Shown here: positions 8,083-47,790 of the stretch, piece after piece
Layout of the letters: each line of letters starts with the position of its first letter
How positions within the stretch are numbered: the stretch's first letter is position 1
Sequence record: PQ015379.1
Reading direction: 5' to 3' (one strand)
DNA: 64,000 nucleotides
Made by a program: the position numbers and the translations under genes
Notes under the pieces: generated by a model
What the model was told of the DNA's origin: nothing
Databases searched by the model: none
The model's input: the letters and a program-made list of their open reading frames with translations, nothing else

Positions 8083-9276
8083 TCAGTCATCCCACGACGA
8101 CTTTTTCTTACCGGCTTTTTTCTTGGTCTTGTCTTTCGCTTTGGCGCCGCCCTTCACTTCCTTAGAAGCCTTTTTCTTTTTCGGCTTTTCGTCGTCTTCG
8201 TCTTTCGACTTGGACTTCTTCTTCACCTTGGAAGGCTTCTCTTCCTTGGCCGAAGATTTCTTTTTCTTCTTCGGCTTTTCGTCTTCGTCGTCGTCGGAAG
8301 ACTTCTTCTTTTTCTTCTTCGGCTTTTCGTCTTCTTCGTCTTCGTCGAAGCTCACCGACTTTTTCTTTTTCTTCTTCGGCTTTTCGTCGTCTTCGTCATC
8401 GTCGAGCGAAGTGGACTTGGCCTTTTTCTTCTTCGGCTTTTCGTCTTCCTCTTCGTCCTCGTCATCATCGAGGTCTTCACCGCCGATGATTTCCATACGC
8501 TTCACGTCTTCACGTGCTTGCTTTTCGGTCATACGACCGGACGCGTCCAGCAGTTCTTCGGTCAGGTTCCAGACCAGATAACCTTGCTCTTCGTCGGTCA
8601 GCTTGGTTGGGCCATCGGCCTTGTCGATGGTGTATTTGTCGGTGCCCGCTGCATCCGGTTTGAATTTCAGTTTCACGTCGAAACCGTATTTCGCATCGGA
8701 AACGTCGTACTGCGCGGTCTTGCCGGTTTTCTTGTCCTTGACCTTGTTTTCTTCCGACAGTTCTTGCAGACGGTTGATCGAGGTCATGGTCAGGCGGGCA
8801 ACACGCACCGGGGTCCACGTCTCGGAATTGATATCCTTGAACCCGGTTTTCTTTTCTTCTTTGGTCGGCTTCGACGCCTTACGGGGCGGGCCTTCTTCCT
8901 GCATGTCGCGGTCGATCACGTTGAACAGCCAGAAGTCGGAGGCACGCACCGGCTTTTCTTTCTGACCCTTGAACTTTTCGGCCAGCGCCATGTACGGGCA
9001 CTTGACGCCTTTTTTCGGGGTTTCCGGATCGTTCGGGTCGAAGTCAATGGCGTAACGCGGAATGTTCACTTCGCGTTTTTCTTTGCCCTTGGCACCGGCC
9101 CACAGCTTGATCCACACTTGGCGAACTTGCAGCGGCATGATCGGCAGAATGCGGAACGGGAAATACTTGTTTTTTGGCCAGACGATCATGTCAACCAATT
9201 CGTCCAGTTTGGTCGAATCGTTACCACGGCTGCTGGTCTTGATGCTGCCCATGCCTTTAAAAACGGCGCTACCCAT
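8083..9276 (-). CDS. gp32-like single-stranded DNA-binding protein with long charge-block C-terminal tail
   Basis: Start MGSAVF at 9276 (AGAGGA RBS); FRILP...CPY...FWLFNVIDR core; adjacent to recA; repeated DDDEDEKPKKKKK units; ends WDD. Confidence 0.6.
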   Translation of the reverse strand: MGSAVFKGMGSIKTSSRGNDSTKLDELVDMIVWPKNKYFPFRILPIMPLQVRQVWIKLWAGAKGKEKREVNIPRYAIDFDPNDPETPKKGVKCPYMALAEKFKGQKEKPVRASDFWLFNVIDRDMQEEGPPRKASKPTKEEKKTGFKDINSETWTPVRVARLTMTSINRLQELSEENKVKDKKTGKTAQYDVSDAKYGFDVKLKFKPDAAGTDKYTIDKADGPTKLTDEEQGYLVWNLTEELLDASGRMTEKQAREDVKRMEIIGGEDLDDDEDEEEDEKPKKKKAKSTSLDDDEDDEKPKKKKKKSVSFDEDEEDEKPKKKKKKSSDDDEDEKPKKKKKSSAKEEKPSKVKKKSKSKDEDDEKPKKKKASKEVKGGAKAKDKTKKKAGKKKSSWDD

Positions 9277-9369
9277 GAGTCTTCCTCTTGATGAATTTCT
9301 GTACCCGAAGACGTTCAATCTTCTAGGTACGATTTACAGTTTTTCAACCGGTCTACCGAGGGCAGGAAA

Positions 9370-16132: not shown

Positions 16133-16678
16133 TTACTCGAAGTCGTCGTACTCTTTTTTCTTTTTCGGCTTGTCGCCTTTCTTGGCTTTCTTGCCGTCGC
16201 TGTCCTTGGACTTTTTCTTCTTCGAAGATTTCTCTTCTACGTCCTTGGATTTCTTTTTCTTGGCCGGTTTTTCGTCGTCTTCAGCCTTGGCCTTTTTCTT
16301 CTTGGCCGGTTTTTCTTCCTCGGCTTTCACCTTGGATTTCTTGGACGGCTTTTCTTCGTCCTTTTTGGCTTTCTTGCCTTTGGCCGGTTTCTCTTCCTCG
16401 GCCTTGGCTTTCTTGCCTTTGGCAGGCTTTTCGTCTTTCTTGGCCTTGGCGCCTTTGGCGTCTTTGGCAGCGGCCTTGCCTTTGCCTTTGGCCGGGGCTT
16501 CGTCGCCGTTCAGCTTGGCTTCGAGGGCTTCGATTTGGGCGTTGGTTTCTTCCAGCTGCGCATCGACAGTTTCAGAAACTTTGGCCTGCGCCTTTTGGGT
16601 GGCTTCGAGGGCACGGGCCTGCTTGCGCAGACGACCGATTTCGGATTTGGCGTTGATGGTTACGTCGTTCTTGGCCAT
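16133..16678 (-). CDS. Lys-rich histone H1-like/charged disordered protein with N-terminal coiled coil
   Basis: Repeated EEKPAKGKKAK units. Confidence 0.75.
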   Translation of the reverse strand: MAKNDVTINAKSEIGRLRKQARALEATQKAQAKVSETVDAQLEETNAQIEALEAKLNGDEAPAKGKGKAAAKDAKGAKAKKDEKPAKGKKAKAEEEKPAKGKKAKKDEEKPSKKSKVKAEEEKPAKKKKAKAEDDEKPAKKKKSKDVEEKSSKKKKSKDSDGKKAKKGDKPKKKKEYDDFE

Positions 16679-16771
16679 GGTATTTCAGGTTCCTATTGGT
16701 TGCCGATTAGGCGGAGAGAACACCGGAAGCATCCGATGATCAGAAAATTTTCAAAATGCCGATTTTGGGCG

Positions 16772-16800
16772 AAAAGAAACCCGGCGGTTAGACCGGGTTC
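16772..16800 (-). terminator. intrinsic terminator after poly-Glu gene
   Basis: AACCCGG-TCTAACCG-CCGGGTT then TCTTTT on the minus strand. Confidence 0.7.
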
Positions 16801-16849
16801 CTTTGGAATACGCGGTTCGAATTAAGAAGTTATTCGAGAGGCGCGAAGG

Positions 16850-17380
16850 TCAGTCTTCCTCTTCTTCCTCTTCCTCTTCCTCTTCCTCTTCCTCTTCCTC
16901 TTCCTCTTCCTCTTCCTCTTCCTCTTCCTCTTCCTCTTCCTCTTCCTCTTCCTCTTCCTCTTCCTCTTCCTCTTCCTCTTCTTCCTCTTCTTCCTCTTCC
17001 TCTTCTTCCTCTTCTTCCTCTTCCTCTTCCTCTTCTTCCTCTTCTTCCTCTTCTTCCTCTTCTTCCTCTTCTTCCTCTTCCTCTTCCTCTTCCTCTTCCT
17101 CTTCCTCTTCCTCTTCCTCTTCCTCTTCCTCTTCTTCCTCTTCCTCTTCCTCTTCTTCCTCTTCTTCCTCTTCTTCCTCGGCCTCTTGCAGTTCGCCGAT
17201 GGCGCCGATCACGTCTTCAACGGTTTCGAAGCCTTTGTCTTGGAAGGAAACCAGAATTTGCAGCAGCACGCCGAGGTTGATCAGGTTCAGATCATCGGCG
17301 GTCAGTTGCGGGGCGCTCTTTTTCTTCGAGGCCTTTTTAGCGGCTGGTTTTGCTTTTGCTTTCGAGGACGACTTTGCCAT
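16850..17380 (-). CDS. poly-glutamate protein: basic N-tail, short hydrophobic helix, 108 consecutive Glu
   Basis: 176 aa; GGAG RBS; own terminator; two ACTGTAAA motifs upstream. Confidence 0.8.
   Translation of the reverse strand: MAKSSSKAKAKPAAKKASKKKSAPQLTADDLNLINLGVLLQILVSFQDKGFETVEDVIGAIGELQEAEEEEEEEEEEEEEEEEEEEEEEEEEEEEEEEEEEEEEEEEEEEEEEEEEEEEEEEEEEEEEEEEEEEEEEEEEEEEEEEEEEEEEEEEEEEEEEEEEEEEEEEEEEEED
16856..17179 (-). repeat. 324-bp GAA/GAG microsatellite encoding Glu108
   Basis: (TTCCTC)n interspersed with TTCTTCCTC units on the plus strand. Confidence 0.95.
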
Positions 17381-17422
17381 GTGAATCTAACTCCAGTTGG
17401 GATGATGTACTGCTGAATATGG

Positions 17423-17465
17423 TTTACAGTTTTCGACTGCTAACCCGGTATGTAGGGTTTACAGT
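17423..17465 (-). promoter_or_regulatory. tandem ACTGTAAA motifs (putative phage promoters)
   Basis: TTTACAGT at 17423-17430 and 17458-17465 in the intergenic space upstream of the poly-Glu gene. Confidence 0.65.
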
Positions 17466-17516
17466 TTTGAGCCACATGGGCGCCTCAGTCGAGGTCGCCC
17501 ATGAACTCGGTGTCAG

Positions 17517-18080
17517 TTACTTCTTTTTCTTTTTCTTGCCGGAGTCGATTGCTACGACCTTTCCCGACTTTTTCTTGCCTTCGTCGTCCGACGATTTGGC
17601 ACCGCGACCGGAAGCCTGCGAGCCTTCGGCGTCGGCGGCTTTGATTTCGTACTGCACGTTTTCGTTGTCGCTGAACACGGACTGGCCGCCGTCGCCTTTA
17701 ACGATGATATCCGGGCCGTTGAACTTCAGGGTGCCGGTGGCGGAGGCAGCTACGCGACGTTGCATAACGGTGATCGAACCGCCTTTTTCGTCGCCCAGTT
17801 GTTCGAGAATGTCTTCGTTGCGGTAGACCGAAACAACCATTTTCTTCGAAGCGCTGGTGGCCTTGTGGCGCCAGATGGTGAACAGGTCCGAACGTTCGAT
17901 CAGGTAGCCCGGAACTTCGACCGGCTGTTGCGAGAACGCGGTCACGGTGAACAGGCCGGTCTTCATCGAGAACGGAGTTTTCGCGCTGGTGCCGCTCAGC
18001 TTACGCAGGGCTTTTTCCAGCTTGGAAACTTTGGAACGTGCAACGGTTTTGGTCTTGCTGGTTTTTTCGGTCTTGGCCAT
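17517..18080 (-). CDS. hypothetical protein with Lys-rich termini
   Basis: Start MAKTEK at 18080; ends GKKKKKK. Confidence 0.75.
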   Translation of the reverse strand: MAKTEKTSKTKTVARSKVSKLEKALRKLSGTSAKTPFSMKTGLFTVTAFSQQPVEVPGYLIERSDLFTIWRHKATSASKKMVVSVYRNEDILEQLGDEKGGSITVMQRRVAASATGTLKFNGPDIIVKGDGGQSVFSDNENVQYEIKAADAEGSQASGRGAKSSDDEGKKKSGKVVAIDSGKKKKKK

Positions 18081-21139: not shown

Positions 21140-22324
21140 TTACTGGTTCAGGTTTTCGAGCGACTGCAATACTGCCGAAACGCTGGTAGCGCGCTGCACG
21201 CTTTCACCGGCTTCGTTCTCGACGTAGAAAATATCCACGAACCGAAGGTTCTGGAAATTCTCGTTCTCGATGCGAACGGTGCGAACGTAATCGACGCTAG
21301 CGCCGTCTACTTCACGCGTGTACATGATTGTCAGAACACCATCCTTTTGTTCTGTCAGGGTATCCGATGGAAGTTGATCAGCGATCAGCTGCAATTTTTC
21401 CATGTGGATTGCCGCCAGCACTGCGGGGTCTTCTTTGACCGGGCCGGTCGGCTGGTTCAGCGCTTGTGCAACATCATCAGCGCTTTGGCCTTGGGTTTGA
21501 ACCGGGGCCGCTTCGCTTTCTGGTGCTGGTGCTTCAGGCTCTTCAGGCAACAGGGCCGCGCCTTCGCTTTGTGGCTCTTCCTGCGCGATTACAGCGCTTT
21601 CAGGGGCCGGGGTATGCTCGGCTACCGGGTCAACCGCTGGTGCGGCTTCCTGCGCGTCAGGCTGCGCGCTGGATTGTTCGGCGTCGGCTTGTTCTTCGGG
21701 GAAGTCGAACTGCGCATTGGTCGATGGCTGGGCGTCGTCCTCTTCGCGGAAATCTTCCTCTTCCTCGAAATCCTCTTCCTCTTCCAGTTCTTCCTCTTCT
21801 TCAGGAATTTCTGGCGCCGCTTCGGAAACAGGCGGCTGGCCGATGCGCGGAACGATACTCAGAACACGGCCCGAATCTTCGCCGGAACTTTCGGCAGGTG
21901 CACGGCTGGCACCGGTTTCGGTTTCTTCGTCTTCTTCGTCGTCTTCCAGATCATCGAACGCGACACGCAGCAAATCGTGGTCGATTTCTTCGCTGCACAG
22001 GTACAGCACGAATTCGCCGTCGCCTTCGTGACTGGAAAGGAACAAATCACCTTGGAAACGCGCCTCGGTTTCCAGCATGATATCACCGACGATTTGCGAC
22101 AGTTCGTCGGGGTCCACCAGTTCCCACATAGGGAGCGAAACGCGCTTGGCGAAAACTTTGGGCGCGTCCGGATCTTCATCGCGCAGCAGATCGTCGTCGG
22201 TCAGTTCGTGCCATTCGGCCAGTTCACCCGGATCGACGCTAAGCGTCATATTCAGGATGCCGATGATGTGGGCGCGGATTGCGATCAGGGCAGAAGCTGC
22301 CAGCCCAGCAAAAAATGCGTTCAT
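21140..22324 (-). CDS. highly acidic, largely disordered protein with hydrophobic N-terminus
   Basis: 394 aa; GAGGT RBS; EEEEELEEEEDFEEEEDF and E/A/P-rich linker. Confidence 0.75.
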   Translation of the reverse strand: MNAFFAGLAASALIAIRAHIIGILNMTLSVDPGELAEWHELTDDDLLRDEDPDAPKVFAKRVSLPMWELVDPDELSQIVGDIMLETEARFQGDLFLSSHEGDGEFVLYLCSEEIDHDLLRVAFDDLEDDEEDEETETGASRAPAESSGEDSGRVLSIVPRIGQPPVSEAAPEIPEEEEELEEEEDFEEEEDFREEDDAQPSTNAQFDFPEEQADAEQSSAQPDAQEAAPAVDPVAEHTPAPESAVIAQEEPQSEGAALLPEEPEAPAPESEAAPVQTQGQSADDVAQALNQPTGPVKEDPAVLAAIHMEKLQLIADQLPSDTLTEQKDGVLTIMYTREVDGASVDYVRTVRIENENFQNLRFVDIFYVENEAGESVQRATSVSAVLQSLENLNQ

Positions 22325-22394: not shown

Positions 22395-24284
22395 TTACAG
22401 GCTGATGCCGTTTTCTTCGCAGATGCCAACCAGTTCGTCGAACGAAACGGTTTTCAGCAGCAGCTTGTCGGTGTTGATCAGGCCCGGAATCAGTTCGCCG
22501 TTTTTCTCACGCAGGCCGATCAGCAGATACTGTTGGTCGCCAATGTTCAGCGTGAAGCCCGGTTCTACTTCGTAGCAGAAGGTGGTGAACACATCCTGCG
22601 AGGCATACCACTGTTCGGCGGCGGCGCGCATCGGGTTCTGGTACTTGCCAGTCGGAACGATGGCGGCCATGCGCTCACAGGCGGAATCGACGTAGGCGCT
22701 CGAATCTTCGGGGAACATGGTTTCGGCGTCAGGCACGAAGGTTTCGGATTCGGAGAAATCGGTTTCCTCTTCCTCTTCCAGTTCCTCTTCCTCTTCCAGT
22801 TCCTCTTCCTCTTCGACTTCCTCTTCTTCCTCCACCTCTTCCTCTTCTTCGACTTCCTCTTCCTCTTCGACTTCCTCTTCTTCCTCCACCTCTTCCTCTT
22901 CTTCGACTTCCTCTTCTACGTCAAGCGGATGGTCGTCGTTCAGTTGGCCCAGCTGGTGCTGGTCGAGGTCGGCGTCCAGATCGTCGGCGAAATTATCGCG
23001 ACGTTGTTTAGCCAAAAAAGCTTCGACTTCCTGCGCCGAAACACCAGCGGTTGCGAAGCTGATGGCAACGGTGCAGAAATCGGCGTTGCGACCGGCGAAC
23101 ACGGAAACCACGTTCACGTCGTATTCGCTCACGATGAACGCACGCACTTTTTCTTCGATCAGATCGCGCAGGTCGTTGGCGGTGTCGTCGTCGAATTCAG
23201 TAACGGCGATAACCTTTTTCTCGGAAGCCGGAACTTCACGATTTTTCGGCAGGGCGCCGCCAGCCTGTTGGTTGGTTTTGCCTTCGTAAACGAACTTGCC
23301 GCCGACCTGCACAACGTCAGAAACGTGAATGCGCAGGCCGCTATCGAGTTCGAGGGTGCCGGTGTTGAAAATGCGTTCAACGGTCTGCGGTTTTTTGCCG
23401 ACCACGATTTGCGACACTTTCTTTTTCAGGTCGCGGGTGGTGACAGGTGCAGGCTTGGCCGACGCCGGTTTCGCAGCGGGCTTTTTGTTGGCCTGTTCCC
23501 ACAGTTCTTTCAGTTCAGCGATGTAATCGTCGCTGTACACGGCAAATTTGCCGCTGGTGGTCATGCGCACTTCATCCACTTGGAATTCGGTGCCATCTTC
23601 CAGAACGCAACGGCCCGACGAATAGGTTTTCGCAACCTTTTGGTCTTCGCCGTCGTAGTCGATCACCTTGCCGCGTACGTCTTTGGTTTCGTACTGGCCA
23701 GCGGGACCGTAGAGGGCACCATCGAATTGAGGTGCGGCGCTGTCGTCGGTTTTCTTTTCCGATTTTTTGGTCACGCCACCTTTGGCCGGTGCGGCTTCGG
23801 TTTTGGCCGAAGGTTTTTTGCCCGACGCTGGTTTGGTCGAAGCTTTGGCCGGGGTGTTGCTTTCTTCTGGTTCAGCATCGCAGCCGTAACCACGGCCTTT
23901 GCGTTGAACGTCGGCCAGATTGAAAATCGAACCATCCACCAGTTCAACACGGTCGGTTTTGCGCAGAACGCGTTTCACTTCGACGCCGTTGATTTTCTTG
24001 CCTTCGAGTTCATCGAGGGTAAGCGGGCGCTGATCACGTGCGGACGGACGCGGGGCGGCTGCTTCTTTGGCCGGGGCTTTTTCAGCCGGGGCTTTTTTGG
24101 CAGCGCCGCCTTTCATATCAACGAAGACGCCACGGCCTTTGTTGTACACGTCTGCGAACTGAAACTCGGAACCTTCCTTGGTGCGGATGGTGCCGTTCTT
24201 CAGGTGCTTGATCACAGTTTCTTTGACCACGCCTTTTTTGCCGTGGTTAACGTTGATTGCTTTACCGGTCAGGTTGGTGCTCAT
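22395..24284 (-). CDS. repeat-domain protein with four internal modules, K/A/P linkers and an acidic (V/L)E5 repeat
   Basis: 629 aa; modules G.EFQFADV..KG, GSIFNLADV..KG, GTEFQVDEV...G, GLRIHVSDV...G. Confidence 0.8.
   Translation of the reverse strand: MSTNLTGKAINVNHGKKGVVKETVIKHLKNGTIRTKEGSEFQFADVYNKGRGVFVDMKGGAAKKAPAEKAPAKEAAAPRPSARDQRPLTLDELEGKKINGVEVKRVLRKTDRVELVDGSIFNLADVQRKGRGYGCDAEPEESNTPAKASTKPASGKKPSAKTEAAPAKGGVTKKSEKKTDDSAAPQFDGALYGPAGQYETKDVRGKVIDYDGEDQKVAKTYSSGRCVLEDGTEFQVDEVRMTTSGKFAVYSDDYIAELKELWEQANKKPAAKPASAKPAPVTTRDLKKKVSQIVVGKKPQTVERIFNTGTLELDSGLRIHVSDVVQVGGKFVYEGKTNQQAGGALPKNREVPASEKKVIAVTEFDDDTANDLRDLIEEKVRAFIVSEYDVNVVSVFAGRNADFCTVAISFATAGVSAQEVEAFLAKQRRDNFADDLDADLDQHQLGQLNDDHPLDVEEEVEEEEEVEEEEEVEEEEEVEEEEEVEEEEEVEEEEELEEEEELEEEEETDFSESETFVPDAETMFPEDSSAYVDSACERMAAIVPTGKYQNPMRAAAEQWYASQDVFTTFCYEVEPGFTLNIGDQQYLLIGLREKNGELIPGLINTDKLLLKTVSFDELVGICEENGISL
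22764..22920 (-). repeat. 18-bp tandem repeat (~9 copies) encoding (V/L)EEEEE
   Basis: DVEEEVEEEEEVEEEEEV...LEEEEELEEEEET in translation. Confidence 0.9.
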
Positions 24285-28078: not shown

Positions 28079-29670
28079 TTACTCCACAGGGAGGCCCGAA
28101 ACGGTCGGGTCTGGTTTTTTCATGTAGTTCTTCACACGCTCGGCAGTGTCACGCGCTGCACGGGCGCCCGGTTCACGCTGATCATCTTTCAGGCCTTTGA
28201 TTTCAGCCTTGATCGACTTGATCTTGGTTTTCAGGTCCGACTCTTCCAGCGCCGCCAACTGGCGCACTTTCCGTTCGAGGATGATTTCTGCATCGGCTTC
28301 CGGCATTTTCAACGCCTTGGCCAGCACAGCAGCAGGGGTTTTCGACGCCAGAACTTTCGGCAAAGCTTTCAGCAGCTTTTCACGATTCTGCACCGCATAC
28401 AGATAGACTTCGTTCAGGTGCAGTTCTTTGGCAGCCTTGTCCAGCAGGTAGCCGATCAGACGCTCTTCGAGTTTGATCCGATACTTGATCCACGCGCCAA
28501 AGTATTGGACGTAGTTCACGTATTTGAATGTGTTGGTTTCGTCGCCCGGCTTGCGGATCGTGATACCCAGTCGGTAACTGACCGAGGAACGAATCGCCTT
28601 GTCAACTTTGGCGCAGACTTCATCGAATTTTTCTTCGTTCATGTTTTTCGGACATGACACTTCGATGTGTGCACCGTATGGGCCAGCGTGCTTGTTCTTT
28701 TTGCCGGAAGTGTTCGACGCGTCTTTCACGCCGTCAATGTTCGCCAGCTTCTGCAACGCCTTGTAAACGCCCTCTTCACCGGCCAGCGTGCCGGGGCAGA
28801 AGATTTGATGCGAATGGTGCGTTTGGCCACGTCATAATCGACAAGGGGCATGTACTGCACCGAGCCTTTGCCGGTCGCCATCAGTTCTTCGATTTGTTCA
28901 TCGGACGAAACGTCGATACAGCCAAACGGGTGCACGATCTTCAGAGCAGCAGCCAATTTCTTCGGCGTGTATTCCTTGCCGTTCAACATGTCGATAACGA
29001 CTTTCGAAACAGACGCCACCGAGAACGCAGGGTTGCCCACCTTCACCCCGTAGGCCGGGGGCGGCGTCGAGGTCAGGAAGAACAGAGTTGGCAGCAGCGC
29101 AGGCAGGTACAGCGGCAACTTTTCGTCGTTGGAAAAGTTCGGTTCCATCGGTACGACTTTCAGATACTGCGAGTCGAGCAGGAACATGTCCGCGAATTTC
29201 GATTTTTTCGCTTCGGTGTAACGATACGCCGATGCCGACGTGCCGTCAGGTTTACCCCAGCCACCTTGGCCCCACACCAGCGGCGGGTTGCTGTTGGCAA
29301 TCGTCACCATCGCGCCATAGCACGCGGAATCGCCGTGCGGGTGATATTTACCGATGGCGTCACCGACCGTACGTGCCGATTTCTTGAAACCTCCGGTCGA
29401 ATGCAGCTTGAGGCCGTCGAGTGCCCACAGCACGGCGCGGTGCACAGGCTTCAGGCCGTCGCGGAAATCAGGGACCGCACGATCTTCCACCACGTACGAC
29501 CCGTAAATGTGCAACGCAGCATCGGAAAATTCGTTGATCGTTTGCTGTTTTGTTTCGAGGGCCTTCGTCTCGAATTTCAGCAGCGGCGTTTTCGCCACGG
29601 ACTGCTTGGTTTTTGGGGCGGCGGTCACTTTCTTCGCTTTGACCTTCGCCACTTCTTTCGTCTTCGCCAT
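28079..29670 (-). CDS. gyrA: type IIA topoisomerase A subunit (GyrA/ParC-like, no beta-pinwheel CTD), interrupted by a -1 frameshift near 28801
   Basis: RAVPDFRDGLKPVHR, KSARTVGDAIGKYHPHGDS, catalytic AYRYTEA; adding one base at ~28801 gives IRIKS-FCPGTLAGEEGVYKALQKLAN and a 530-aa ORF. Confidence 0.85.
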
Positions 29671-29960: not shown

Positions 29961-32049
29961 TAATCTTCCAGCCCCAAAAGTTTGCGACGGTTCACCGCGT
30001 CTTCCGACACAACGGCACGGAACCATTGTTCATCGGCGGCGCTGGCAAACGGGTTGATTTGAATCAGTTTGCGGTGGCTCGGATCGAAGGCGATTGGGCC
30101 GATATATTCCGGGCCAACTTCCCCCAACCTTTGATGCGCACCAGATCCTGATCTTTTACAGATTTCGGCGCAGCTTTACGGCATTCGTCGAAGGTCATTC
30201 CGCCGTAGAGCGTACCTTTCGAATCGAGTGCAGCATACAGCGGGGCCTGCACGCAGAACACACGGCCTTGCTTGAACAGGTCAGGCAGCAGGCGGTACAA
30301 AACTGCGAGATACAGAACCGCGATGTGGCCGCCGTCCGGGTCCGGGTCAACGAGGAACAGAACGGATTTCACGCGAAGTTTTTCAACGTCGATTTTCGGA
30401 CGCTCGGCCTTCGGGTCCATGGTCTTCAGGTCGCAGCCCATGGCGATCAGGAAATTGGAAATATCCTTGTGCGTGATGATTTTCGCAATCGGGGCCTTCA
30501 GGGCGTTCAGTGGTTTACCACCGGCTGCCAGAACTTCCTGATAATGCGTGTCGCGGGCGTCGTCGGACGGGCCTTTTGCCGAGTCACCTTCAACCACGAA
30601 CAGTTCACGTTCCCACGGTTTGCAGTGCGGGCTAACAGCCAGCTTGGCAGGCAGTACGCCTTTGCCTTTTTTCTTCACATCGGCCATGGATTTCACGACA
30701 GCGGCCAGTTCTTCCCGGCCCTTGTTCATGATCAAGGCGCGCTTGATGATATCCTTGGCGACTTTCGGGTTCGCTTCGAAATATTTGTCGAAAGCGGGGA
30801 ACAGAAGTTCTTCCACTTCCTTGTCAACTTTCGAACTCAGTTTGTCCTTCACCTGCGAGGTGTAGGCCGCGCCGTGCATACGCCAGTCGAACATCCCGGT
30901 GAGGCCGATCAGCAGGTCGGAACTGGTCCAACCTTGGCCCGCTTTTTTACTCTTCGCTGGTTTCTTTTCCGGCACGTGTTTTTTCACAGCCTTGGAAAGT
31001 GCGGCGGTGAAACCAGTCACGTGCGAACCACCGTCGATGGTTGGCGAGGTGTTCACGAAAGTCAGGAAGTGGTCGGCGTCCGTGTGGTCAGACCAAACGA
31101 GGGCACAGGTGATGTTGTCGTTTTTGAACGTGAACGGTTTGCCTTGCGGCACCAGATCGCGCTGTTCGCACATGTCTTTTGCGACGAAAGCCAGATCCTT
31201 TTTGTTCAGATACACATGGTCGTCACGCTTGCCCTTCACGATGGAAGAGAAACGAATTTCCAGACCGGGGTTGAGCATGGCCATGTTGTTCAGCCACTGC
31301 GCCACATCCTTGACCACAGGAATTGCACGGCGGAAATCTTTTGGCAATTTCTTGCCCCGGCGTGCGTCTTCGGAACAGACGGTTTGGTCGAGTTCCAGTG
31401 CGACGATGGTTCCGTATTTTTTCAGGCTATCTTTCAACAGGCCCATAACGTCTTTATCGACGGCCTTGCAGGGCAGCGGGTTTTTCCCCTTGGAAATGAT
31501 TTCGCCTTTGCTGTACACCTGCGTTTGCAGCTTGCCGCCGTACGTGGTCCAGACGCGCATGCGATCCGAAACCGCGTTCACCGCCGACATACCGATGCCG
31601 TGAGTACCCGCCGAAGTTTTGTACGCCGAATCGTTGAACTTGGCGCCCGCGTGGGTCTTCGTGTAGGCAGCGGTCATTTTGCTGATTTTCGTACCGTCTT
31701 TCATTTTCACGAAGTCGGTAGGAATGCCGCCCGCTTGGTCAGCGATGATGTAAATTTCGGCGTCGATGTTGAGGATAACTTCGATCACCTTGTTACGGCC
31801 TGCCACGTGTTCGTCGTAGCAGTTATCGACGCCCTCTTTGACGCAGCGGTAAGCCATGGCCGACCCACGATCACCGAGGTACATCGCCGGGTTTTCGCGG
31901 ATACCGTCGAGGCCTTCAAGGACCGTGAAATCTTCCTGCGCGCTCACTTTCTTTTTGGTGGCTTTCTCGACGCCTTGTGCCACCTTCGTTTTCTTCGGTT
32001 TTTCTTCAGCGGCAGCTTTCGCTTTCGCCTTCACTTTCTTCTCGGCCAT
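29960..32049 (-). CDS. gyrB: type IIA topoisomerase B subunit (GyrB/ParE-like), interrupted by a -1 frameshift at 30121-30125
   Basis: GIRENPAMYLG, EGVDNCYDE, GTHGIGMSAVNAVS, VVEGDSAKG, VDPDPDGGHI; one extra G in TGGGGG restores KGWGEVGPE...FDPSHRKLIQI...RRKLLGLED. Confidence 0.9.
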
Positions 32050-33763: not shown

Positions 33764-34456
33764 TTAGCGGTTACGCAGCTTCACATCCTGATAGGGAATG
33801 GTGAAATCGATGCTCGAAGCGGTGGCCACCAGCGTATTGCCGGTATCCGAATCGTCAAGTTTTTTATTCCCTTCCTGTTTAGCGTTCGGGTCGTCCTTGC
33901 TGAATTCGCGAGCCTTGTTCGCCTCGGCTTCGCGTTTTTCTTTCTCTTCCTCTTCGACCGCCGGGTCCACCACTTTTTCAGCGGATTCAACAGGGATCAC
34001 GTCGGATTCTTTGCGCGAGGATTTCACGTTCGGATACGGTTCGGGAGTGGCCGACGCGGTAGCCTCTTCGTCGTCCTCTTCGTCGTCTTCCTCTTCCTCT
34101 TCGTCGTCCTCGGATTCATCATCTTCGGAATCGTCGCCGTCGTCCGAATCATCGGAATCATCCCCGTCGTCGCCGTCGTCAGATTCCTCTTCCTCTTCGT
34201 CCCCCGAATCGCCAGTTTCTTCACCAGATTCAGCCGGGGTTTGCGGAGCTTTCTTCGCGTCTTTCTTCTGCTTTTCAGCAGCAGCTTTGCGTTCTTCCTC
34301 GGCCTCTTTTTCTTGACGCGCTTTTTCTTCGCGGTCGCGTTCGGCCAGTTCCTGATCGGAATATTGCAGTTGTTCGGCGGTGCCCATGTCTGGCGCGCTG
34401 TACGCACCCGAGGCCGTGGCTACCGGCTGCTTGGGAATCGAAATGGTGATCTTCAT
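33764..34456 (-). CDS. acidic disordered protein with three ATAS motifs
   Basis: 230 aa; long D/E/S tract. Confidence 0.75.
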   Translation of the reverse strand: MKITISIPKQPVATASGAYSAPDMGTAEQLQYSDQELAERDREEKARQEKEAEEERKAAAEKQKKDAKKAPQTPAESGEETGDSGDEEEEESDDGDDGDDSDDSDDGDDSEDDESEDDEEEEEDDEEDDEEATASATPEPYPNVKSSRKESDVIPVESAEKVVDPAVEEEEKEKREAEANKAREFSKDDPNAKQEGNKKLDDSDTGNTLVATASSIDFTIPYQDVKLRNR

Positions 34457-35589
34457 TTTTTCGTGAGCCTCAGAGTCTTTTTCTTGGCCTTGGAATCAGG
34501 CGATTTCATTTTGAGTTTCTTCGGTTTCTTGCGCTGGGCCTCAAGCGATTCTTTCACATCGTCTTCGAGGTAATTGCGCATGTTGTTCGTGATATCCAAA
34601 ACCTTGATCAGCTGATCAGCCTTCAGTGCGTGCAGCATGTTGTCCTTGAGTGCGCGTTTGTCGAAGCACACTTTTTCCATCGGGCAAGGTTCGTACGCAG
34701 GCATCAAGCGTTCGTAGTCGTCCGGGCACTGGCAAGGTTTCTGCTTGATCGCAATTTCCGGTTTGTTCTGGATGAAACTGTTCACAGCAGAGCGGTAAAT
34801 TTTCTTCTGCTGGATGATCAGCTGGCGCGTTTCTTCACGACGGCGCGGTCCCCAGCGTTCGGCCTTCTCTTTGAATTCGTACGGGTTGTCCCGGCTCAAG
34901 TACAGCAGCGAGAAACCAGAAATTTTCATGCCGTATTTTTTCTCAAGCACGTAGCAGTAGGTCGGAACCTGCATCAAGTGTTCGCGCTTGGGCAATTTGT
35001 TGCCCTTCATCAGACCTTTTGTCGTGGTCTTGTAGTCGAGCACCCAATAGGTGCCGTCCGGCATTTCATAAATGCAGTCGATGTGGCCTTTCAGCCCGAA
35101 GTAATCGATGCACTTTTCCACGTACTCACACGCGACCCCACATTCGGGGCACAGGTTGTCCGTGGTGTTTTTGGTGGTCAACGTACCTTTGCGGTACATC
35201 ACACCTTTTTCGTCGTACAGGTCGCGGGCGTCGTGGTGCTTCTGGCACCGAGGGTTGCGGCATTTCCAATCGCCGAAAACCTTTTTCGTTTGCCCCATGT
35301 AATACTGAATATTTTCGTGTGCAGCGGTCCCAACCGAGGTGAAGTAGCCACCGCCTGCTGCCATGTTTGATTGGTAGAATCCGTGCTCGGCTGCGAGCAT
35401 GAATTGCATGTGTACCAGAATCGGGCAAATGGGGAATGACGAAGGCCGGTATTCTGGCCCTCGACCGTTCGGGGTGATAATCGAGCTATCCATTATTTGG
35501 GCGTACACTTTGCCCATATGCGACTCGATGTGCACCGACCGTTGACCGGTCTGAATACGTTTCGCTAAGTCCTTAAACACGTGGCACAT
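34453..35589 (-). CDS. Cas4/RecB-like PD-(D/E)xK exonuclease, probably Fe-S binding
   Basis: YRPSSFPICP, GTAAHE, GHIDCI...VLDYKTT, QVPTY, KPC...CP..KVC; Lys-rich C-tail. Confidence 0.8.
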   Translation of the reverse strand: MCHVFKDLAKRIQTGQRSVHIESHMGKVYAQIMDSSIITPNGRGPEYRPSSFPICPILVHMQFMLAAEHGFYQSNMAAGGGYFTSVGTAAHENIQYYMGQTKKVFGDWKCRNPRCQKHHDARDLYDEKGVMYRKGTLTTKNTTDNLCPECGVACEYVEKCIDYFGLKGHIDCIYEMPDGTYWVLDYKTTTKGLMKGNKLPKREHLMQVPTYCYVLEKKYGMKISGFSLLYLSRDNPYEFKEKAERWGPRRREETRQLIIQQKKIYRSAVNSFIQNKPEIAIKQKPCQCPDDYERLMPAYEPCPMEKVCFDKRALKDNMLHALKADQLIKVLDITNNMRNYLEDDVKESLEAQRKKPKKLKMKSPDSKAKKKTLRLTKK

Positions 35590-35595
35590 CCAGTA

Positions 35596-35664
35596 ACTGT
35601 AAATGGTACTTATAAATTGTCATTTTGATGGTCGAAACATGAAACTCGATGATGCGTTTACAGT
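35596..35664. promoter_or_regulatory. divergent pair of ACTGTAAA motifs
   Basis: ACTGTAAA (+) at 35596-35603 upstream of primase; TTTACAGT at 35657-35664 (minus copy) upstream of the Cas4-like gene. Confidence 0.65.
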
Positions 35665-36721
35665 CATCATGGGAGAGCTTGAAAAGATTCAAGGTCCGAC
35701 CCGGCACAAAGCGGGCAGCTTTGAAATCGTTTGTCCTTTCCATGAAGATTCTAACCCCTCGCTCGGCATTAACATCAGTCAGGAAGCGAAAGTCCCGGTC
35801 GGCACGTTCAACTGCTGGTCGTGTGGCGCTTCAGGATCGTGGAATAAACTTGCGGCTAAACTCGACCTGCAACAAATCAAATCGTGGCAGCATTTCGAGG
35901 GGACGACAGCCGGGCAGCGTGCACGCTTCAACAGGAAAAAGAAAGAGCGTGAGAACACCAACAACCGTTCGCTTAATCGTCTGCGTGAGGAACTGGGCGG
36001 CGCGATGATTCCGTGGCCCAAAGAAAAAGAATGGCGCGGTTATCCGGGGACAATGATCGAGCGTGTGCAAGGTCAAATGTTCAGCGAGGACAACCGGGAA
36101 GACGTGATGCTCGCTCTACCTATTTACATTAATGGTCGGTATAGGGGCGGCGTAAAAGCGTTGATGGAAAAAGCCGAAACCGGCATGTCCTATATCAACA
36201 CCAAGGGCGACTGGGTAATGGATTATGGGTTGCTCGGTTACGATTTTATCCGCAAGCATGAACTGTTCGGCTGCAAGGCCGTGGTGCTGTGTGAGGGTCC
36301 ACGCGACTGGCTGCGTCTGGTGCTGAATAAAATCCCGGCGTGTGCGGTGCTCGGTGCAAAAATGTTCGGGCCACGAAAGCTGATGCTGTTGCAGGGCCTC
36401 GGTATCACGAAAATTTACACGTTGACGGATAACGACAAAGCAGGCCGGGCCATGGCGCGCTTGATCGAAGGTTTCTGCGAAGGTCAGATCGAATTCGAGG
36501 AACTGCGACTGCCGCGCAAGTTCGATAAAGATGGTGAGTTGATCAAGCTGGACCCGGACGCCGCCAGCCAGAAAATCATCGACAAGGTGAAGGCGCTGGT
36601 CTACGCGTACGACCCTGATCCCAAACCGAAAAAGAAAAAGCCCAAGGCTATCGAGAAAACCAGCAAGGAATTCCCGAAGCTATCCATCGAAAAGAAAGTT
36701 AAGAGGATTAAGAAGCAATGA
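35639..36721 (+). CDS. dnaG: DnaG-type DNA primase
   Basis: CPFHEDSNPS...FNCWSC zinc finger; TOPRIM VLCEGPRD...LTDNDKAG; start MKLDD at 35639. Confidence 0.88.
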   Translation: MKLDDAFTVIMGELEKIQGPTRHKAGSFEIVCPFHEDSNPSLGINISQEAKVPVGTFNCWSCGASGSWNKLAAKLDLQQIKSWQHFEGTTAGQRARFNRKKKERENTNNRSLNRLREELGGAMIPWPKEKEWRGYPGTMIERVQGQMFSEDNREDVMLALPIYINGRYRGGVKALMEKAETGMSYINTKGDWVMDYGLLGYDFIRKHELFGCKAVVLCEGPRDWLRLVLNKIPACAVLGAKMFGPRKLMLLQGLGITKIYTLTDNDKAGRAMARLIEGFCEGQIEFEELRLPRKFDKDGELIKLDPDAASQKIIDKVKALVYAYDPDPKPKKKKPKAIEKTSKEFPKLSIEKKVKRIKKQ

Positions 36722-38259: not shown

Positions 38260-38695
38260 GGGGGAATTCAGTTTCGTACAGGAAGCATTGGAAGGTCAGG
38301 CGGTGCAGCACAAATTCGCGCTCGCCGCCCGGCATCTTCGAATAGCCGGTGCTGGTATTTTTCAGACGCAGGCAATTCAGCTTGCGAGTGGCCATCACAC
38401 GTTTCGAATTCGATTCGGTATACAAGAAAATTTCTTTCGGCAATTCAATCGTGCCGTAGGCAATCCCGTACAGGTATTCGATGTTTTGCAGACGCTCGAC
38501 GACCCCCAGTTGCAACTGGTAGGGGCGGGTTTTCTCTTCGTACCCCATGGCATCGAAATCCAGATTCGCGTAAACCACGTTATCCAGAAAGATTTCAGGC
38601 ATCTTGTTTTTGGTTGCGTCGGGATTGTTCCCGATGGAAAACCCGGCCCGTGTCAGCTTTACGTCGAATGTGTAGACTGGTGTATCTGCTTTCAT
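38246..38695 (-). CDS. hypothetical protein
   Basis: 149 aa ORF. Confidence 0.7.
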   Translation of the reverse strand: MKADTPVYTFDVKLTRAGFSIGNNPDATKNKMPEIFLDNVVYANLDFDAMGYEEKTRPYQLQLGVVERLQNIEYLYGIAYGTIELPKEIFLYTESNSKRVMATRKLNCLRLKNTSTGYSKMPGGEREFVLHRLTFQCFLYETEFPLGNK

Positions 38696-38742
38696 TTTTG
38701 ACGCCCATTTTATGGTCCAATGTTCCCTTATATTTACATTAT

Positions 38743-39375
38743 TTAAAGGGAAGGGGCGTCCAAAAGTACGTTGAACAAACGGGTTTCGTCCGTATGACTT
38801 TTGATAAAATCATAGGGTTTCACGCGAAGCAGACGGGCCGCGTGATAAAGCGCGATAAAGAACGAATCCAGCTGGTGAATCACGATCCCGGCCCCTTTGT
38901 ATTTGACCTTGAGGTCTTCATACATTTCTTTCAAATCGGCTGGGGTCCGGTTGAATTCGTTTTTCCACGTGGCCGCCGTGTAAAACTCGGTTGGAATGTC
39001 CGGATGAATCAGCAGCATGGCCCCAAGCATCATGCCAATGGCTTCGACCGTGGTGCCAGCCCCGCGACCGGGCCGCGATTGGAAGCGTTCGGCTGCGATG
39101 AAATCAATGGTTTCGAGCGGGAGCGTTTTGTACTCTTTGACGAACTCGACGCATTCGGTTTGCGCCAGCTTCACGTCATGAATCATGTGCTCCATCATTT
39201 TGGTGCCAATGACCTTGAAGCGCATTCCGCCTTCTGGTCCCAACCACGCTTCGATTACCGTCACCGCGTAGTTTTTTGTGCCCATGTCTTCGCCCATTAC
39301 ACGAATGCGTTTGGTGCGCGGCACAGGCAATTCTTGTTTGACCGGTTTGGCTTTCGCCTTCCGTTTACGGGCCAT
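38743..39375 (-). CDS. RuvC-like Holliday junction resolvase
   Basis: RVMGEDMGTKNYAV, FIAAERFQSR, HQLDS; basic N-tail. Confidence 0.7.
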   Translation of the reverse strand: MARKRKAKAKPVKQELPVPRTKRIRVMGEDMGTKNYAVTVIEAWLGPEGGMRFKVIGTKMMEHMIHDVKLAQTECVEFVKEYKTLPLETIDFIAAERFQSRPGRGAGTTVEAIGMMLGAMLLIHPDIPTEFYTAATWKNEFNRTPADLKEMYEDLKVKYKGAGIVIHQLDSFFIALYHAARLLRVKPYDFIKSHTDETRLFNVLLDAPSL

Positions 39376-39462
39376 GGGTCAGTCTCCTATCTCATACCAC
39401 TTAATTACAATTCGCATCCTCGGTTTTTCGACCAGTAATTTAAAGGGAACGGAGGACATTCT

Positions 39463-40551
39463 ATGATCAAACGCGGACCCAGCAATGTGCGGCGCAATCA
39501 CGCCCGCAACTTCATCCAAACGCAGGCGCAAGCCCGCATGGATGAAACGGTTAAGGCTTACAACCATCAAGTTTCCAATGCGCTGGCCGTCAACGCGGTG
39601 CAGATTGTTTTGTATCAGGTAGAACGGCAGGTCGGGCGCCCCTGTTCCTGCTGCCGAACCAACGTTGCAATTCCGGGCAGCGTTTCCAACGTAACGCCCA
39701 CGATTCCCCAGCGCGACAGGGCAACGGACGGTATTGAATTCGGTTTCCAAGACGACGATATTTTCGGCGCGGAATCGGAAATGGATCAGCACATGTTCAA
39801 CGATGTGCAGGTGCGCGACGTTTCCGGTAGTCAGCCCGACGAAGGTCTGCGCGGAATTGAAACGGAAGAGTACGAAGATTCGGTAGGCCAAGGTTCGGTG
39901 AATTGCGGTATCTGTTACCGCTCGCTGAAACAGCCGGGCTACAAAGCGTATGGTATGCAGCGCACGATTTACACGCACTACGATATCGAACGCATCGAAG
40001 GCTACCATCTGGATTCCACCAGCGCCCCGCACGCGTTGGTACGCGAACACAACGACGGCCATGTGTGCTTCCGTCTGATGATCCCGAAATATTTCAAGTC
40101 GGTGATCTACAGCATTCGCGAAGATTTGTACGTGCTGCGTGAGAAACCGCTGCGCAAAGACGGCGCTATCATCACCATCGACGACCTGCGCCGTCACGCC
40201 GGGCAGTTCATGGAAATTTACGTGAAGTCCGAGCGCTTTACCCACGTCGTTTTCGAATTCGACATGGGCATCCCTCGGATCAACGCGAACATTGGCGGGG
40301 AAACCACGACCCTCGATTACGACCGGCTGCAAACCATGAGCGATATTCCTATTGTTTTGGGTCCGGAAGTTTCGGACGTGAACGAAGGCGATATCGTGTG
40401 CATTCCCGAACGAAATCTGTACCTGAAAATCCGCGACAAAGAACGGAAGATCATGCAGGATCAAGCCCGGTTGGAATGGGTGTGTTCGTCCCGTGTTCTT
40501 CAACCCACTGAGCCACTGCGTGCCATTGCCAAAGGATACAAACTGCGATGA
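39463..40551 (+). CDS. possible virion (neck/head-closure-like) protein
   Basis: 362 aa; PCSCC and NCGICY pairs; GGAGG RBS; function is a weak guess. Confidence 0.4.
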   Translation: MIKRGPSNVRRNHARNFIQTQAQARMDETVKAYNHQVSNALAVNAVQIVLYQVERQVGRPCSCCRTNVAIPGSVSNVTPTIPQRDRATDGIEFGFQDDDIFGAESEMDQHMFNDVQVRDVSGSQPDEGLRGIETEEYEDSVGQGSVNCGICYRSLKQPGYKAYGMQRTIYTHYDIERIEGYHLDSTSAPHALVREHNDGHVCFRLMIPKYFKSVIYSIREDLYVLREKPLRKDGAIITIDDLRRHAGQFMEIYVKSERFTHVVFEFDMGIPRINANIGGETTTLDYDRLQTMSDIPIVLGPEVSDVNEGDIVCIPERNLYLKIRDKERKIMQDQARLEWVCSSRVLQPTEPLRAIAKGYKLR

Positions 40552-46336: not shown

Positions 46337-46634
46337 TCCTTTTGTGATCGTCTACTGTGCAGAAATTTCTGATGCGTTGGCCAAAATTCCCGAAGAGGAT
46401 TGGCCTTCGCATGTGGACGATCCAGAACACCGGCTCTACGGCCACCCGATGTTCCTTTTGACCGTGAGCCAAACACAACATATTGGCATCAGCAATAAAC
46501 CGAATCCAGATTGGATAAAATCCCACAAACTAATGCTGCGTTACGGACTCGTTGAGCCGCGCAGTTATGGAGCGACCAATGAGCGACGAACCGAAGAAAA
46601 AGAAGAAAAAGAAAAAGGGGTTGATGAAATCTGA
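46329..46634 (+). CDS. hypothetical protein
   Basis: 101 aa ORF. Confidence 0.5.
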   Translation: MPDPFVIVYCAEISDALAKIPEEDWPSHVDDPEHRLYGHPMFLLTVSQTQHIGISNKPNPDWIKSHKLMLRYGLVEPRSYGATNERRTEEKEEKEKGVDEI

Positions 46635-47790
46635 ATCCCTTGACCTGAAGCCGAAGAAGAAAAAGAAATCTTCCGAGGAACAGGAAACCGGCCTCAAGAA
46701 AAAGAAGCCGAAGGACTATGGGCGTGACGTGAGTGGCACCCTCGAAGGCGACGGCAAGAAGAAAAAGAAAAAGGATTTGGCGGAAAAACCCGCTGAACCT
46801 GTTCGCGAACTTCTGCCGGTCGAACAAGACGATTACATCATCGTCAAAGTCGGCAAGAAAAACGAACTCGCCTTCGCACACAGCCCCAAGCGTAACACCG
46901 CGTACATCGAGCGCACGATGAACACCGATGCGCCGGTTACTTTCGAATATGACGGTAACACGCTGATTGCCAACCTCGGCAAAGATCCACTGCCCGGCAA
47001 AGTGCATGGCGTGGATATCCAGCCGCACTATGGCACCATCGATACCCCAATGGGGCCGATGCACATGTACCGCAAACTGAACGACGCGGAAAAAGATGCA
47101 ATCCGTATCGCGCAGAAAAAGATCGTGAAGAAATTCGAAAGCCTCGGCCTCGAAAAACTCTTCCCGTTCACCTCGCTGGAAGTGCACAACCCACGCGGGC
47201 GCTGGGCCGGTATGTATCAGGTCAGTTTCAAATCTGGCGAGGCAGTGGACAAGGTAAAACTGTTCGCGAAAATCCTCGACGACCAAATTTACAACCAGTA
47301 CGTTTTCGCCCACGAATGCGGCCATGGCATCTGGTATCGCTACGTGCCCGAGCGCATCCGCGCCCTGTGGCTGGAACAGTACAACGCGATGACCGCTGTC
47401 ACCAAGGCCAAGAAATCCGAACTGGCCGACCAGTGCCAATCGCTGATCGCTTCGTCGCTGTCGATTCGTGATTTCCAGCGTGATCTGGAAGGCGATGAAC
47501 TAGCGATGTTCAAGGAAGCGCTGGGCTACCTGAAGAAAGTCCACAAAATGTCGCCTGAAGACGTGAACGTTCTGCTGAACCAAAACAGCAAAGTGCTCGC
47601 CGAAATCTGGCCGACTTCTGCCTCGATTTCCAACGCCGATTCGCTGGCCGCGCTGCATGGTCCGTACGCCGCCGTTTCCGTGCAGGAAATGTTCGCAGAA
47701 ATCTTTGCTGCGCACATCAAAGGCGATCACGTGGGCAAGACCCTGACCAAGCTGCTGGAAAAAACCCTCAAAGTCGCACGGAGCGAATAA
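46579..47790 (+). CDS. zincin-type metallopeptidase with poly-Lys N-terminus
   Basis: FAHECGHG (HExxH) and distal QEMFAE; start MSDEPKKKKKKKK at 46579 with GGAG RBS. Confidence 0.7.
   Translation: MSDEPKKKKKKKKGLMKSESLDLKPKKKKKSSEEQETGLKKKKPKDYGRDVSGTLEGDGKKKKKKDLAEKPAEPVRELLPVEQDDYIIVKVGKKNELAFAHSPKRNTAYIERTMNTDAPVTFEYDGNTLIANLGKDPLPGKVHGVDIQPHYGTIDTPMGPMHMYRKLNDAEKDAIRIAQKKIVKKFESLGLEKLFPFTSLEVHNPRGRWAGMYQVSFKSGEAVDKVKLFAKILDDQIYNQYVFAHECGHGIWYRYVPERIRALWLEQYNAMTAVTKAKKSELADQCQSLIASSLSIRDFQRDLEGDELAMFKEALGYLKKVHKMSPEDVNVLLNQNSKVLAEIWPTSASISNADSLAALHGPYAAVSVQEMFAEIFAAHIKGDHVGKTLTKLLEKTLKVARSE

Follow-up and report, generated by a model that had tools for sequence, protein, structure and literature searches.

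A small gene of the jumbo Pseudomonas phage HRDY3 raises the question of what a phage does with a protein that ends in 108 consecutive glutamates. The gene (poly-Glu gene in the following) is located at positions 16850 to 17380 on the minus strand of a 64,000-nucleotide stretch (the window) of the 313,683 bp genome record PQ015379.1, where a window position equals the record position minus 124,000. It is complete and encodes a protein of 176 amino acids (21.1 kDa, net charge -107), which is annotated in the GenBank record as 'hypothetical protein' (XDJ15127.1). As judged from sequence comparison, the gene is a real member of a small orphan family restricted to Lu11/PaBG/HRDY3-like jumbo Pseudomonas phages. 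For its function, we tentatively favour, at somewhat less than an even chance, that the product would be an abundant, disordered, DNA-like polyanion competing with DNA for Lys-rich segments.

The N-terminal 27 codons (17300 to 17380; this and all other features of the gene are on the minus strand) encode a Lys-rich tail with nine Lys/Arg and no Asp/Glu, which is predicted to be disordered. It is followed by a helical hairpin of helix-turn-helix form with a strongly hydrophobic first helix (codons 28 to 67; 17180 to 17299), which is based on the family alignment, on the ratio of non-synonymous to synonymous substitution rates (dN/dS) and on an AlphaFold2 model obtained with single-sequence input (predicted local distance difference test, pLDDT, 76), with helices at residues 28–48 and 54–79. 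The hairpin with its hydrophobic face is probably an oligomerisation or docking module. Residues 68 to 175 are encoded by 108 consecutive Glu codons (16856 to 17179; 47 GAG and 61 GAA), 108 being the count as assembled, and the gene closes with an Asp codon (GAC) and the stop codon (16850 to 16855). In the resulting C-terminal tail, 109 of 109 residues are Asp or Glu and none is Lys or Arg; with no tryptic site in the tail, the largest tryptic peptide of the protein comprises 127 amino acids.

A first-pass annotation of this DNA had described a basic N-terminal tail, a hydrophobic helix and Glu108-Asp-stop, all of which are borne out by the translation of the open reading frame. It had also described a mixture of GAG-GAA hexamers and GAG-GAA-GAA nonamers, of which 33 and 14 units, respectively, were counted. 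The tract is a compound 6-nt/9-nt microsatellite, the coding strand of which is all-purine over 324 bp, and Tandem Repeats Finder reports a period of 6 with 52.8 copies (score 475). No stop codon interrupts the tract in any of its three sense frames; the +1 frame would give about 108 Arg/Lys and the +2 frame about 110 Gly/Arg, so that a frameshift within the tract would make a polycation from a polyanion. A poly-Ser open reading frame on the plus strand (16803 to 17384) was dismissed as an antisense by-product.

The family was recovered via a conserved neighbouring gene product of 428 amino acids, which served as a handle for a locus search in IMG/VR. This search gave 17 loci, including the two that represent Lu11 and PaBG in IMG/VR. 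An orthologue is present in 13 of the other 15 (11 complete, two cut off inside the tract at the contig end), and in the remaining two (L017 and L020) the position of the poly-Glu gene lies beyond the end of the contig. Altogether, 16 loci share the conserved, syntenic architecture, namely HRDY3, Lu11, PaBG and 13 metagenomic jumbo-phage contigs. The 428-aa protein is 30–80% identical across the loci, which denotes deep divergence; its profile gave a weak and uninformative match to Sel1 repeats only. The HRDY3 gene takes the position typical of the family, between a phrog_22271 gene and a Lys-rich phrog_36478 gene, and its product has the basic N-terminal tail, the alignable helical core and, at the C-terminus, the fully acidic tail with its roughly 100 residues (tblastn match to Lu11 with E = 4e-6). 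The positional orthologues Lu11_0161 (AFH14695.1) and PaBG_00125 (AGS82009.1), both annotated as hypothetical proteins, have their flanking genes and layout in common with it, with acidic tails of 99 and 94 residues, respectively. Their N-terminal identity to the HRDY3 protein is 53% (Lu11) and 26% (PaBG). They differ from HRDY3 in that Asp and Glu are mixed in the tail, with a longest Glu run of 4. The PaBG record likens PaBG_00125 to a eukaryotic ribosome-assembly factor, a resemblance due to low-complexity similarity only.

The basic N-terminal tail is found in all orthologues, and the helical core (42 codons) is under purifying selection (dN/dS 0.08–0.64). The acidic tail is present in every orthologue found and consists entirely of Asp and Glu, except for two residues in PaBG. 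Its end is kept in frame, the relatives finishing in D, DDE or DDDE. Since some orthologues have mixed Asp/Glu tails, acidity and length appear to matter rather than glutamate as such.

Outside this family, no relatives of the protein were found. It had no match in Pfam, PHROGs, PADLOC or PDB sequence searches, and Foldseek with the N-terminal model gave no match against PDB and no significant one against BFVD. A word-indexed protein search with residues 1–67 likewise found nothing. When 1.84 billion representative proteins were searched exhaustively with HMMER, a single 80-aa fragment was retrieved, which belongs to the same family; a second IMG/VR scan with the N-terminal domain returned only the contigs already known, and a metagenome scan for the family gave two fragments only. 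The exact HRDY3 sequence was absent from the public assembly records searched, and no paper naming HRDY3 was found in a literature search. The hairpin is the sole conserved folded module of the protein and, by these searches, is without known relatives.

The first-pass annotation had cautioned that the length of the tract may vary, and the relatives support this. The complete pure-Glu tails (HRDY3 and nine contigs) comprise 58, 83, 84, 94, 98, 100, 105, 108, 109 and 109 residues, most of them thus 83–109, and the tails with mixed Asp/Glu (Lu11, PaBG, L015 and L016) 93, 94, 99 and 104 residues. Two contigs with almost identical N-termini (L012 and L013) have tails of 83 and 108 residues, and in another pair (L008 and L011) 98 and 109 residues are found, with a codon arrangement that varies among close relatives. 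In all pure-Glu tails GAG and GAA are interleaved in 6-, 9- or 12-nt units, with at most five GAA or two GAG in succession; the mixed tails are codon-repeat arrays as well, that of L015 being built of GAA and GAC only. The differing GAG/GAA patterns in close relatives suggest that the tract is a fast-slipping codon microsatellite selected for charge and length. Slippage would pick the codon units that are amplified, while selection would act on charge density and on a length near 100, with pure glutamate as a by-product. In a neighbour-joining tree of the 428-aa neighbour (100 bootstraps), the main pure-Glu clade joins Lu11 (100/100), while L012 and L013 join the mixed-tail contigs L015 and L016 (93/100), and monophyly of all pure-Glu tails was recovered in 0 of 100 bootstraps. 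The presence of pure-Glu tails in two separate clades implies that the composition switched at least twice, with length and full acidity unchanged. Two roles at the level of nucleic acid were rejected as family-wide explanations: a DNA-level (triplex-type) role of the all-purine tract, as the mixed-tail orthologues are 82–86% purine, and an mRNA-level role of GAGG-type, Shine-Dalgarno-like repeats, as L015 is devoid of any GAG codon.

The expression signals of the gene are conserved as well. A Shine-Dalgarno sequence GGAG (17391 to 17394) lies 10 nt before the ATG and is kept in most relatives, being weaker in PaBG. Two copies of the promoter-like motif AAACTGTAAA are located 52 nt (17423 to 17432) and 87 nt (17458 to 17467) before the start codon, and an intrinsic-terminator hairpin leading into a U-rich stretch follows downstream of the stop codon (16773 to 16804; dG -20.4 kcal/mol, z -3.96). 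The hairpin was missed by a simple terminator scan; the relatives conserve it with compensatory changes in the stem. The ribosome-binding site, the pair of motifs and the terminator named in the first-pass annotation are thus all present. Within the window, AAACTGTAAA occurs 16 times compared to 0.1 expected, always along the local direction of transcription (e.g. at 9333, 17423, 17458 and 48548), and is found 24–110 nt before the starts of the genes for SSB, the clamp loader and several small proteins. The poly-Glu gene is the sole gene of the window with two copies at most 100 nt from its start. Almost all orthologues, including that of Lu11, have two to three tandem motif copies and a terminator, and PaBG has one variant motif. 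Together with the tandem motifs of HRDY3 this makes the further statement of the first-pass annotation, that the gene looks highly expressed, plausible; tandem motifs and a terminator fit a heavily transcribed monocistronic unit.

The same motif is annotated as a putative middle/late promoter in the Lu11 record. Its core, AACTGTAAA, has nine matches in the small-gene region of the HRDY3 record (1–50 kb) and one match among the structural genes (188–238 kb of the record), where it precedes the gene of DNA polymerase A; a variant precedes a second polymerase gene. In the latter region, AACTGTAAA was not found before the genes for the major head, tail sheath and tail tube proteins. The tail sheath gene and other structural genes are preceded by GTAATTTAA, with three matches compared to 0.12 expected in the 188–238 kb region and one in the window. 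Motif sites in the 188–238 kb segment (L144) are at 2420, 24141 and 45376. This distribution suggests two classes of promoter; the poly-Glu gene would belong to the putative non-structural, replication-time class. Between the terminator and the downstream Lys-rich gene (16690 to 16770, minus strand), the pattern CAAAATC..N..TTTTGAAAA has been retained by most relatives and may represent a third regulatory element, serving the Lys-rich gene. No tRNA was found in the window, and an Rfam search around the poly-Glu gene was negative.

The poly-Glu gene is embedded in a block encoding helicase, topoisomerase, a RecA-like protein, SSB, a sigma factor, 5'-3' exonuclease, gyrase A and B, a nuclease, primase, clamp loader and SbcCD. 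The adjacent gene (16133 to 16678, minus strand; phrog_36478) encodes a Lys-rich protein of 181 amino acids with 60 Lys/Arg and a net charge of +23, consisting of a coiled-coil-like N-terminus, low-complexity Lys/Ala/Glu/Pro repeats and a conserved aromatic-acidic C-terminal tip. In 13 of the 14 loci where the orthologue is complete, a protein of this kind (net charge +19 to +31) is encoded directly next to it; the search did not locate that of L012. Upstream, the phrog_22271 gene (17517 to 18080, minus strand), conserved in Lu11 and PaBG, encodes a protein of 187 amino acids with Lys-rich N- and C-termini, the predicted model of which (pLDDT 38) was too poor for a fold search. An NCBIfam search, restricted to the proteins neighbouring the poly-Glu gene, found nothing.

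Lys-rich ends are a wider feature of this part of the genome. The first 49 kb of the window encode 71 annotated proteins. A Lys/Arg-rich terminus, defined as at least seven Lys/Arg in the first or last 20 residues, is carried by 15 of them, compared to 2.9 +/- 1.5 in within-protein shuffles (maximum 9 in 1000). Many of the carriers are DNA-handling enzymes; the topoisomerase, SSB, both gyrase subunits, the nuclease and the primase are among the 15, and the tails recur in the Lu11 and PaBG orthologues. Examples of such genes are located at 1830–2798, 28726–29670, 30064–32049, 34453–35580, 35639–36721, 38743–39375 and 46579–47790. The SSB (8083 to 9276, minus strand) has a C-terminal extension of about 130 residues with alternating acidic and Lys-rich blocks and a short Trp-acidic tip, and the SSBs of Lu11 and PaBG end likewise.

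In the tentatively favoured explanation, the poly-Glu gene would be transcribed as its own unit from the two tandem copies of the motif that also precedes DNA polymerase, SSB and clamp-loader genes, and being such a unit with a replication-class motif, it would yield its product in quantity during phage DNA replication. The acidic tail would then bind, purely by charge, to Lys-rich tails and blocks of the phage's DNA-handling proteins, with the Lys-rich protein encoded next door as the proposed first client. Clients would thereby stay in solution, would be kept away from non-target nucleic acid and could exchange rapidly on DNA. The context, i.e. the replication module, the putative replication-class promoter, the conserved Lys-rich neighbour and the Lys-rich tails of replication proteins, favours such a chaperone-like polyanion over a DNA mimic or a cation sponge, all of which the first-pass annotation had proposed.

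Acidic disordered chaperones of eukaryotes act in this way on linker and core histones. Prothymosin-alpha and histone H1 form a disordered complex with competitive substitution (PMC7661507), and acidic disordered regions of Npm2 and Nap1 act as DNA mimetics (PMC10987829). These long, disordered, Asp/Glu-rich polyanions associate with disordered Lys-rich partners through charge only, competing with DNA and accelerating exchange. In the favoured explanation, the HRDY3 protein would be their phage counterpart. The HRDY3 protein matches this functional class in its long Asp/Glu-rich disordered segment, and has a Lys-rich neighbour encoded next door. It differs in composition, as prothymosin-alpha and the Npm2/Nap1 tails are roughly half acidic with other residues interspersed, and there is no homology. 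Gp44 of the Bacillus phage SPO1, a DNA-mimic inhibitor of RNA polymerase, has an N-terminal DNA-binding part and a flexible acidic domain that binds RNA polymerase beta/beta' (PMC8208478). This acidic domain is proposed to mimic single-stranded DNA and, as is the HRDY3 tail, is disordered and without positive residues. It is, however, internal and comprises 67 residues with 57% Asp/Glu, whereas the HRDY3 tail is C-terminal with 109 residues and 100% acidic. Furthermore, the N-terminal domain of Gp44 is folded and Xis-like, in contrast to the predicted disordered tail and two-helix hairpin of HRDY3, Gp44 is a host-takeover gene while the poly-Glu gene lies among replication genes, and no sequence relationship between the two was found. 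By analogy, the HRDY3 protein may work like Gp44 or like prothymosin-alpha. Ocr (T7 gp0.3) and ArdA are, like the HRDY3 protein, highly acidic proteins of phages or mobile elements, and compete with DNA for DNA-binding proteins (PMC3439906, PMC2731889). Both are rigid folded dimers, the carboxylates of which copy the phosphates of B-DNA, whereas the acidic part of the HRDY3 protein is a featureless homopolymer outside the folded module. Seen against these systems, the poly-Glu protein may be a conserved variant of the acidic disordered DNA-mimicking proteins, at the extreme of its kind.

The sequences establish the anatomy of the protein, its conservation, the selection acting on it, and the expression signals and genomic context of its gene. 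Several points weigh against the chaperone-like polyanion. We infer the abundance, the binding partners and the chaperone/competitor mechanism of the protein, and the promoter class assigned to its gene likewise derives from the distribution of motifs. The Lys-rich neighbour is a polyampholyte (60 Lys/Arg and 37 Asp/Glu) rather than a pure polycation, and the length of the acidic tail does not covary with the net charge of the neighbour (r = 0.25, n = 13), on which ground stoichiometric charge matching between the two was rejected as a family-wide explanation. Because the whole gene block is syntenic, the adjacency to the Lys-rich gene is weak evidence for a linkage. The Lys-rich tails of the replication proteins could be mere DNA-binding aids that need no chaperone. 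Moreover, acidic runs can cause bacterial ribosomes to abort translation (PMC9718836; bioRxiv 10.1101/2021.02.02.429294; PMC11162784); the conservation of the acidic end in frame speaks for translation through to the end of the tail.

Among the alternatives, a host-directed flexible DNA mimic is the main one, but less probable than the favoured explanation. The N-terminal tail or the hairpin would dock on DNA or a host factor, and the acidic tail would enter the DNA-binding channels of host RNA polymerase, nucleoid proteins such as MvaT/HU, nucleases or defence enzymes and titrate them, as Gp44 does with its disordered acidic domain and Ocr and ArdA do with folded mimics. The layout agrees with that of SPO1 Gp44 (PMC8208478), the expression signals suit a stoichiometric decoy, and the frequency of the motif in the 1–50 kb small-gene region makes an early-to-middle timing possible; the GC content of the phage (53%) is also counted on this side. 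However, no similarity in sequence or fold to Ocr, ArdA or any solved structure emerged from the Pfam, PDB sequence or Foldseek PDB searches, the gene sits among replication genes instead of in a host-takeover cluster, and a 100% acidic homopolymer has no shape specificity. The enrichment of Lys-rich termini on replication proteins can also be read in another way, with the poly-Glu protein as the anionic scaffold of a charge-driven, membrane-less (coacervate-type) replication compartment, in which hairpin oligomers would display poly-Glu brushes and the Lys-rich termini would serve as address tags. The blocky acidic and Lys-rich repeats in SSB and the Lys-rich neighbour are in line with this, as are other hyper-acidic proteins of the block (net charges -79, -56 and -49) and the wide hydrophobic face of the modelled hairpin, which would suit oligomers. 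We nevertheless consider such a scaffold unlikely, since a polyanion without aromatic or hydrophobic stickers can equally dissolve condensates, and the proposal is wholly inferential; the literature search found no imaging data for this phage group. Slightly more doubtful still is a counter-ion buffer, i.e. an abundant carboxylate store for Mg2+, K+ or polyamines that would set the ionic conditions for replication and condensation of the 314-kb genome. With 109 carboxylates per chain and strong expression signals the protein would be suited to it, and a gene annotated as glutathionylspermidine synthase is encoded outside the window (38577 to 39947 of the HRDY3 record; L143). A sponge of this type would, however, need neither a conserved hairpin nor a basic N-terminal tail nor a tail fixed at about 100 residues; carboxylates bind Mg2+ and polyamines weakly compared to DNA, and sequestering cations during DNA synthesis seems counter-productive. 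A homologue of the corresponding phiW-14 protein is encoded by Lu11, the DNA of which reportedly withstands many restriction enzymes (PMC5977210). The synthase gene and this resistance may reflect DNA modification or polyamine chemistry in the lineage.

The remaining alternatives are considerably less probable. A high charge is frequent among scaffolding and internal proteins of large phages, and the poly-Glu protein might line or fill the capsid electrostatically. The term 'middle/late' chosen by the Lu11 annotators for the motif would agree with a virion protein, and one with a largest tryptic peptide of 127 amino acids would escape ordinary virion proteomics. We regard this as improbable, as the motif of the gene is missing before the major head, sheath and tube genes, as the gene itself lies within the replication block at a distance from the head genes, and as a polyanion packed beside DNA is energetically unfavourable. 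The orthologue is also absent from the virion proteome of PaBG, which is a weak test, as this proteome comprises 14 Coomassie-stained bands only and the tail has no tryptic site. Just as improbable is a runaway repeat, where only the N-terminal 67 residues would matter and the tail would be tolerated junk regenerated by slippage. It would account for a compound microsatellite pattern that shifts between close relatives and for the repeated flips between mixed Asp/Glu and pure Glu. Junk would not, however, stay 100% acidic, in frame and 93–109 residues long from PaBG to HRDY3, ending in an acidic terminus, and no tail-less orthologue was found. Least probable of all is an assembly artefact with a much shorter true tract. 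Two short-read metagenomic contigs (L004 and L006) stop within the tract and a third (L187), one of the two fragments from the metagenome scan, right at it, which marks the tract as an assembly breakpoint, and the tail of L007 has 58 residues only. Yet the tail of about 100 residues is backed by ten complete pure-Glu tails from independent assemblies (58–109 residues) and four mixed tails (93–104 residues). L004, L005 and L006, independent assemblies of one phage type, have an identical codon pattern over more than 70 codons, which shows that this pattern is not assembly noise. Mixed tails pose no particular difficulty to an assembler, and the narrow range of their lengths is therefore the best evidence that an acidic tail of about 100 residues truly exists and is under selection.

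A whole lineage of 260–314 kb Pseudomonas phages has preserved a fully acidic tail, some 100 residues long, at the end of a small protein that appears to be highly expressed and is of the putative replication-promoter class. The family amounts to a natural experiment in protein polyelectrolytes, in which length and charge are kept while the composition flips, with candidate Lys-rich partners encoded in the same genome. If either the chaperone-like polyanion or the compartment scaffold is true, the physics of eukaryotic histone chaperones and condensates would enter phage replication, and the Lys-rich tails on the replication enzymes of the lineage would be explained; the scaffold would, in addition, represent a protein-polyelectrolyte way of organising phage replication. 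Since the tract breaks assemblies and escapes ordinary tryptic proteomics, such proteins are probably under-reported.

The first-pass annotation had called a homopolymer of this length extremely unusual in a prokaryotic virus. A complete IMG/VR scan, using three Glu5 anchors spanning 95 codons, returned 55 stretches, of which only five contain Glu runs of at least 90 residues, namely four contigs of the poly-Glu family (97–105) and one giant-virus metagenome-assembled genome (MAG; 114). The statement holds for its rarity; the tract is, however, shared by a small phage family as its hallmark rather than unique to HRDY3, and giant viruses of eukaryotes have long poly-Glu too. As far as the IMG/VR scans show, this is the longest class of amino-acid homopolymer in phages. 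Among the matches listed in a looser IMG/VR scan, Glu runs of 40–90 residues belong mostly to one giant-virus protein family, plus a few large phage-like contigs. In the giant-virus MAG family (e.g. L036, L075, L097, L025, L057 and L053), poly-Glu of up to 114 residues lies within the protein as a linker and is followed by a conserved domain of about 45 residues at the C-terminus, unlike the terminal tail of the HRDY3 protein. An unrelated phage contig (L084; 1629 to 2543, minus strand) encodes a run of 88 Glu followed by a Lys-rich block, adjoining helicase, initiator, primase and queuosine-type genes, and on an unrelated 215-kb contig (L092; 3922 to 4689, minus strand) a Lys-rich block, a domain and a tail of 73 Glu are combined in one protein. 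The latter two appear to be independent parallels that pair a Glu run with a Lys-rich block, and as such count in favour of the chaperone-like polyanion. All of these proteins differ from the poly-Glu family in their unrelated N- and C-terminal domains, and none has the hairpin.

Besides the poly-Glu protein, several hyper-acidic proteins are encoded in the same block, all on the minus strand. One of them (21140 to 22324; 394 amino acids, net charge -79) has a long acidic Pro/Ala-rich middle part; its Lu11 orthologue is labelled 'putative polyphosphate kinase', a label that was discarded as neither Pfam nor NCBIfam supports it. Another one (33764 to 34456; 230 amino acids, net charge -49) contains a tract of about 60 residues of Asp, Glu, Ser and Gly. 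A protein of 629 amino acids (22395 to 24284; net charge -56) harbours an internal array of Glu5-Val/Leu hexapeptides, for which Glu5-Gln, Glu4-Pro or Glu4-Thr versions are found in the orthologues, making it a second fast-evolving acidic repeat in the block.

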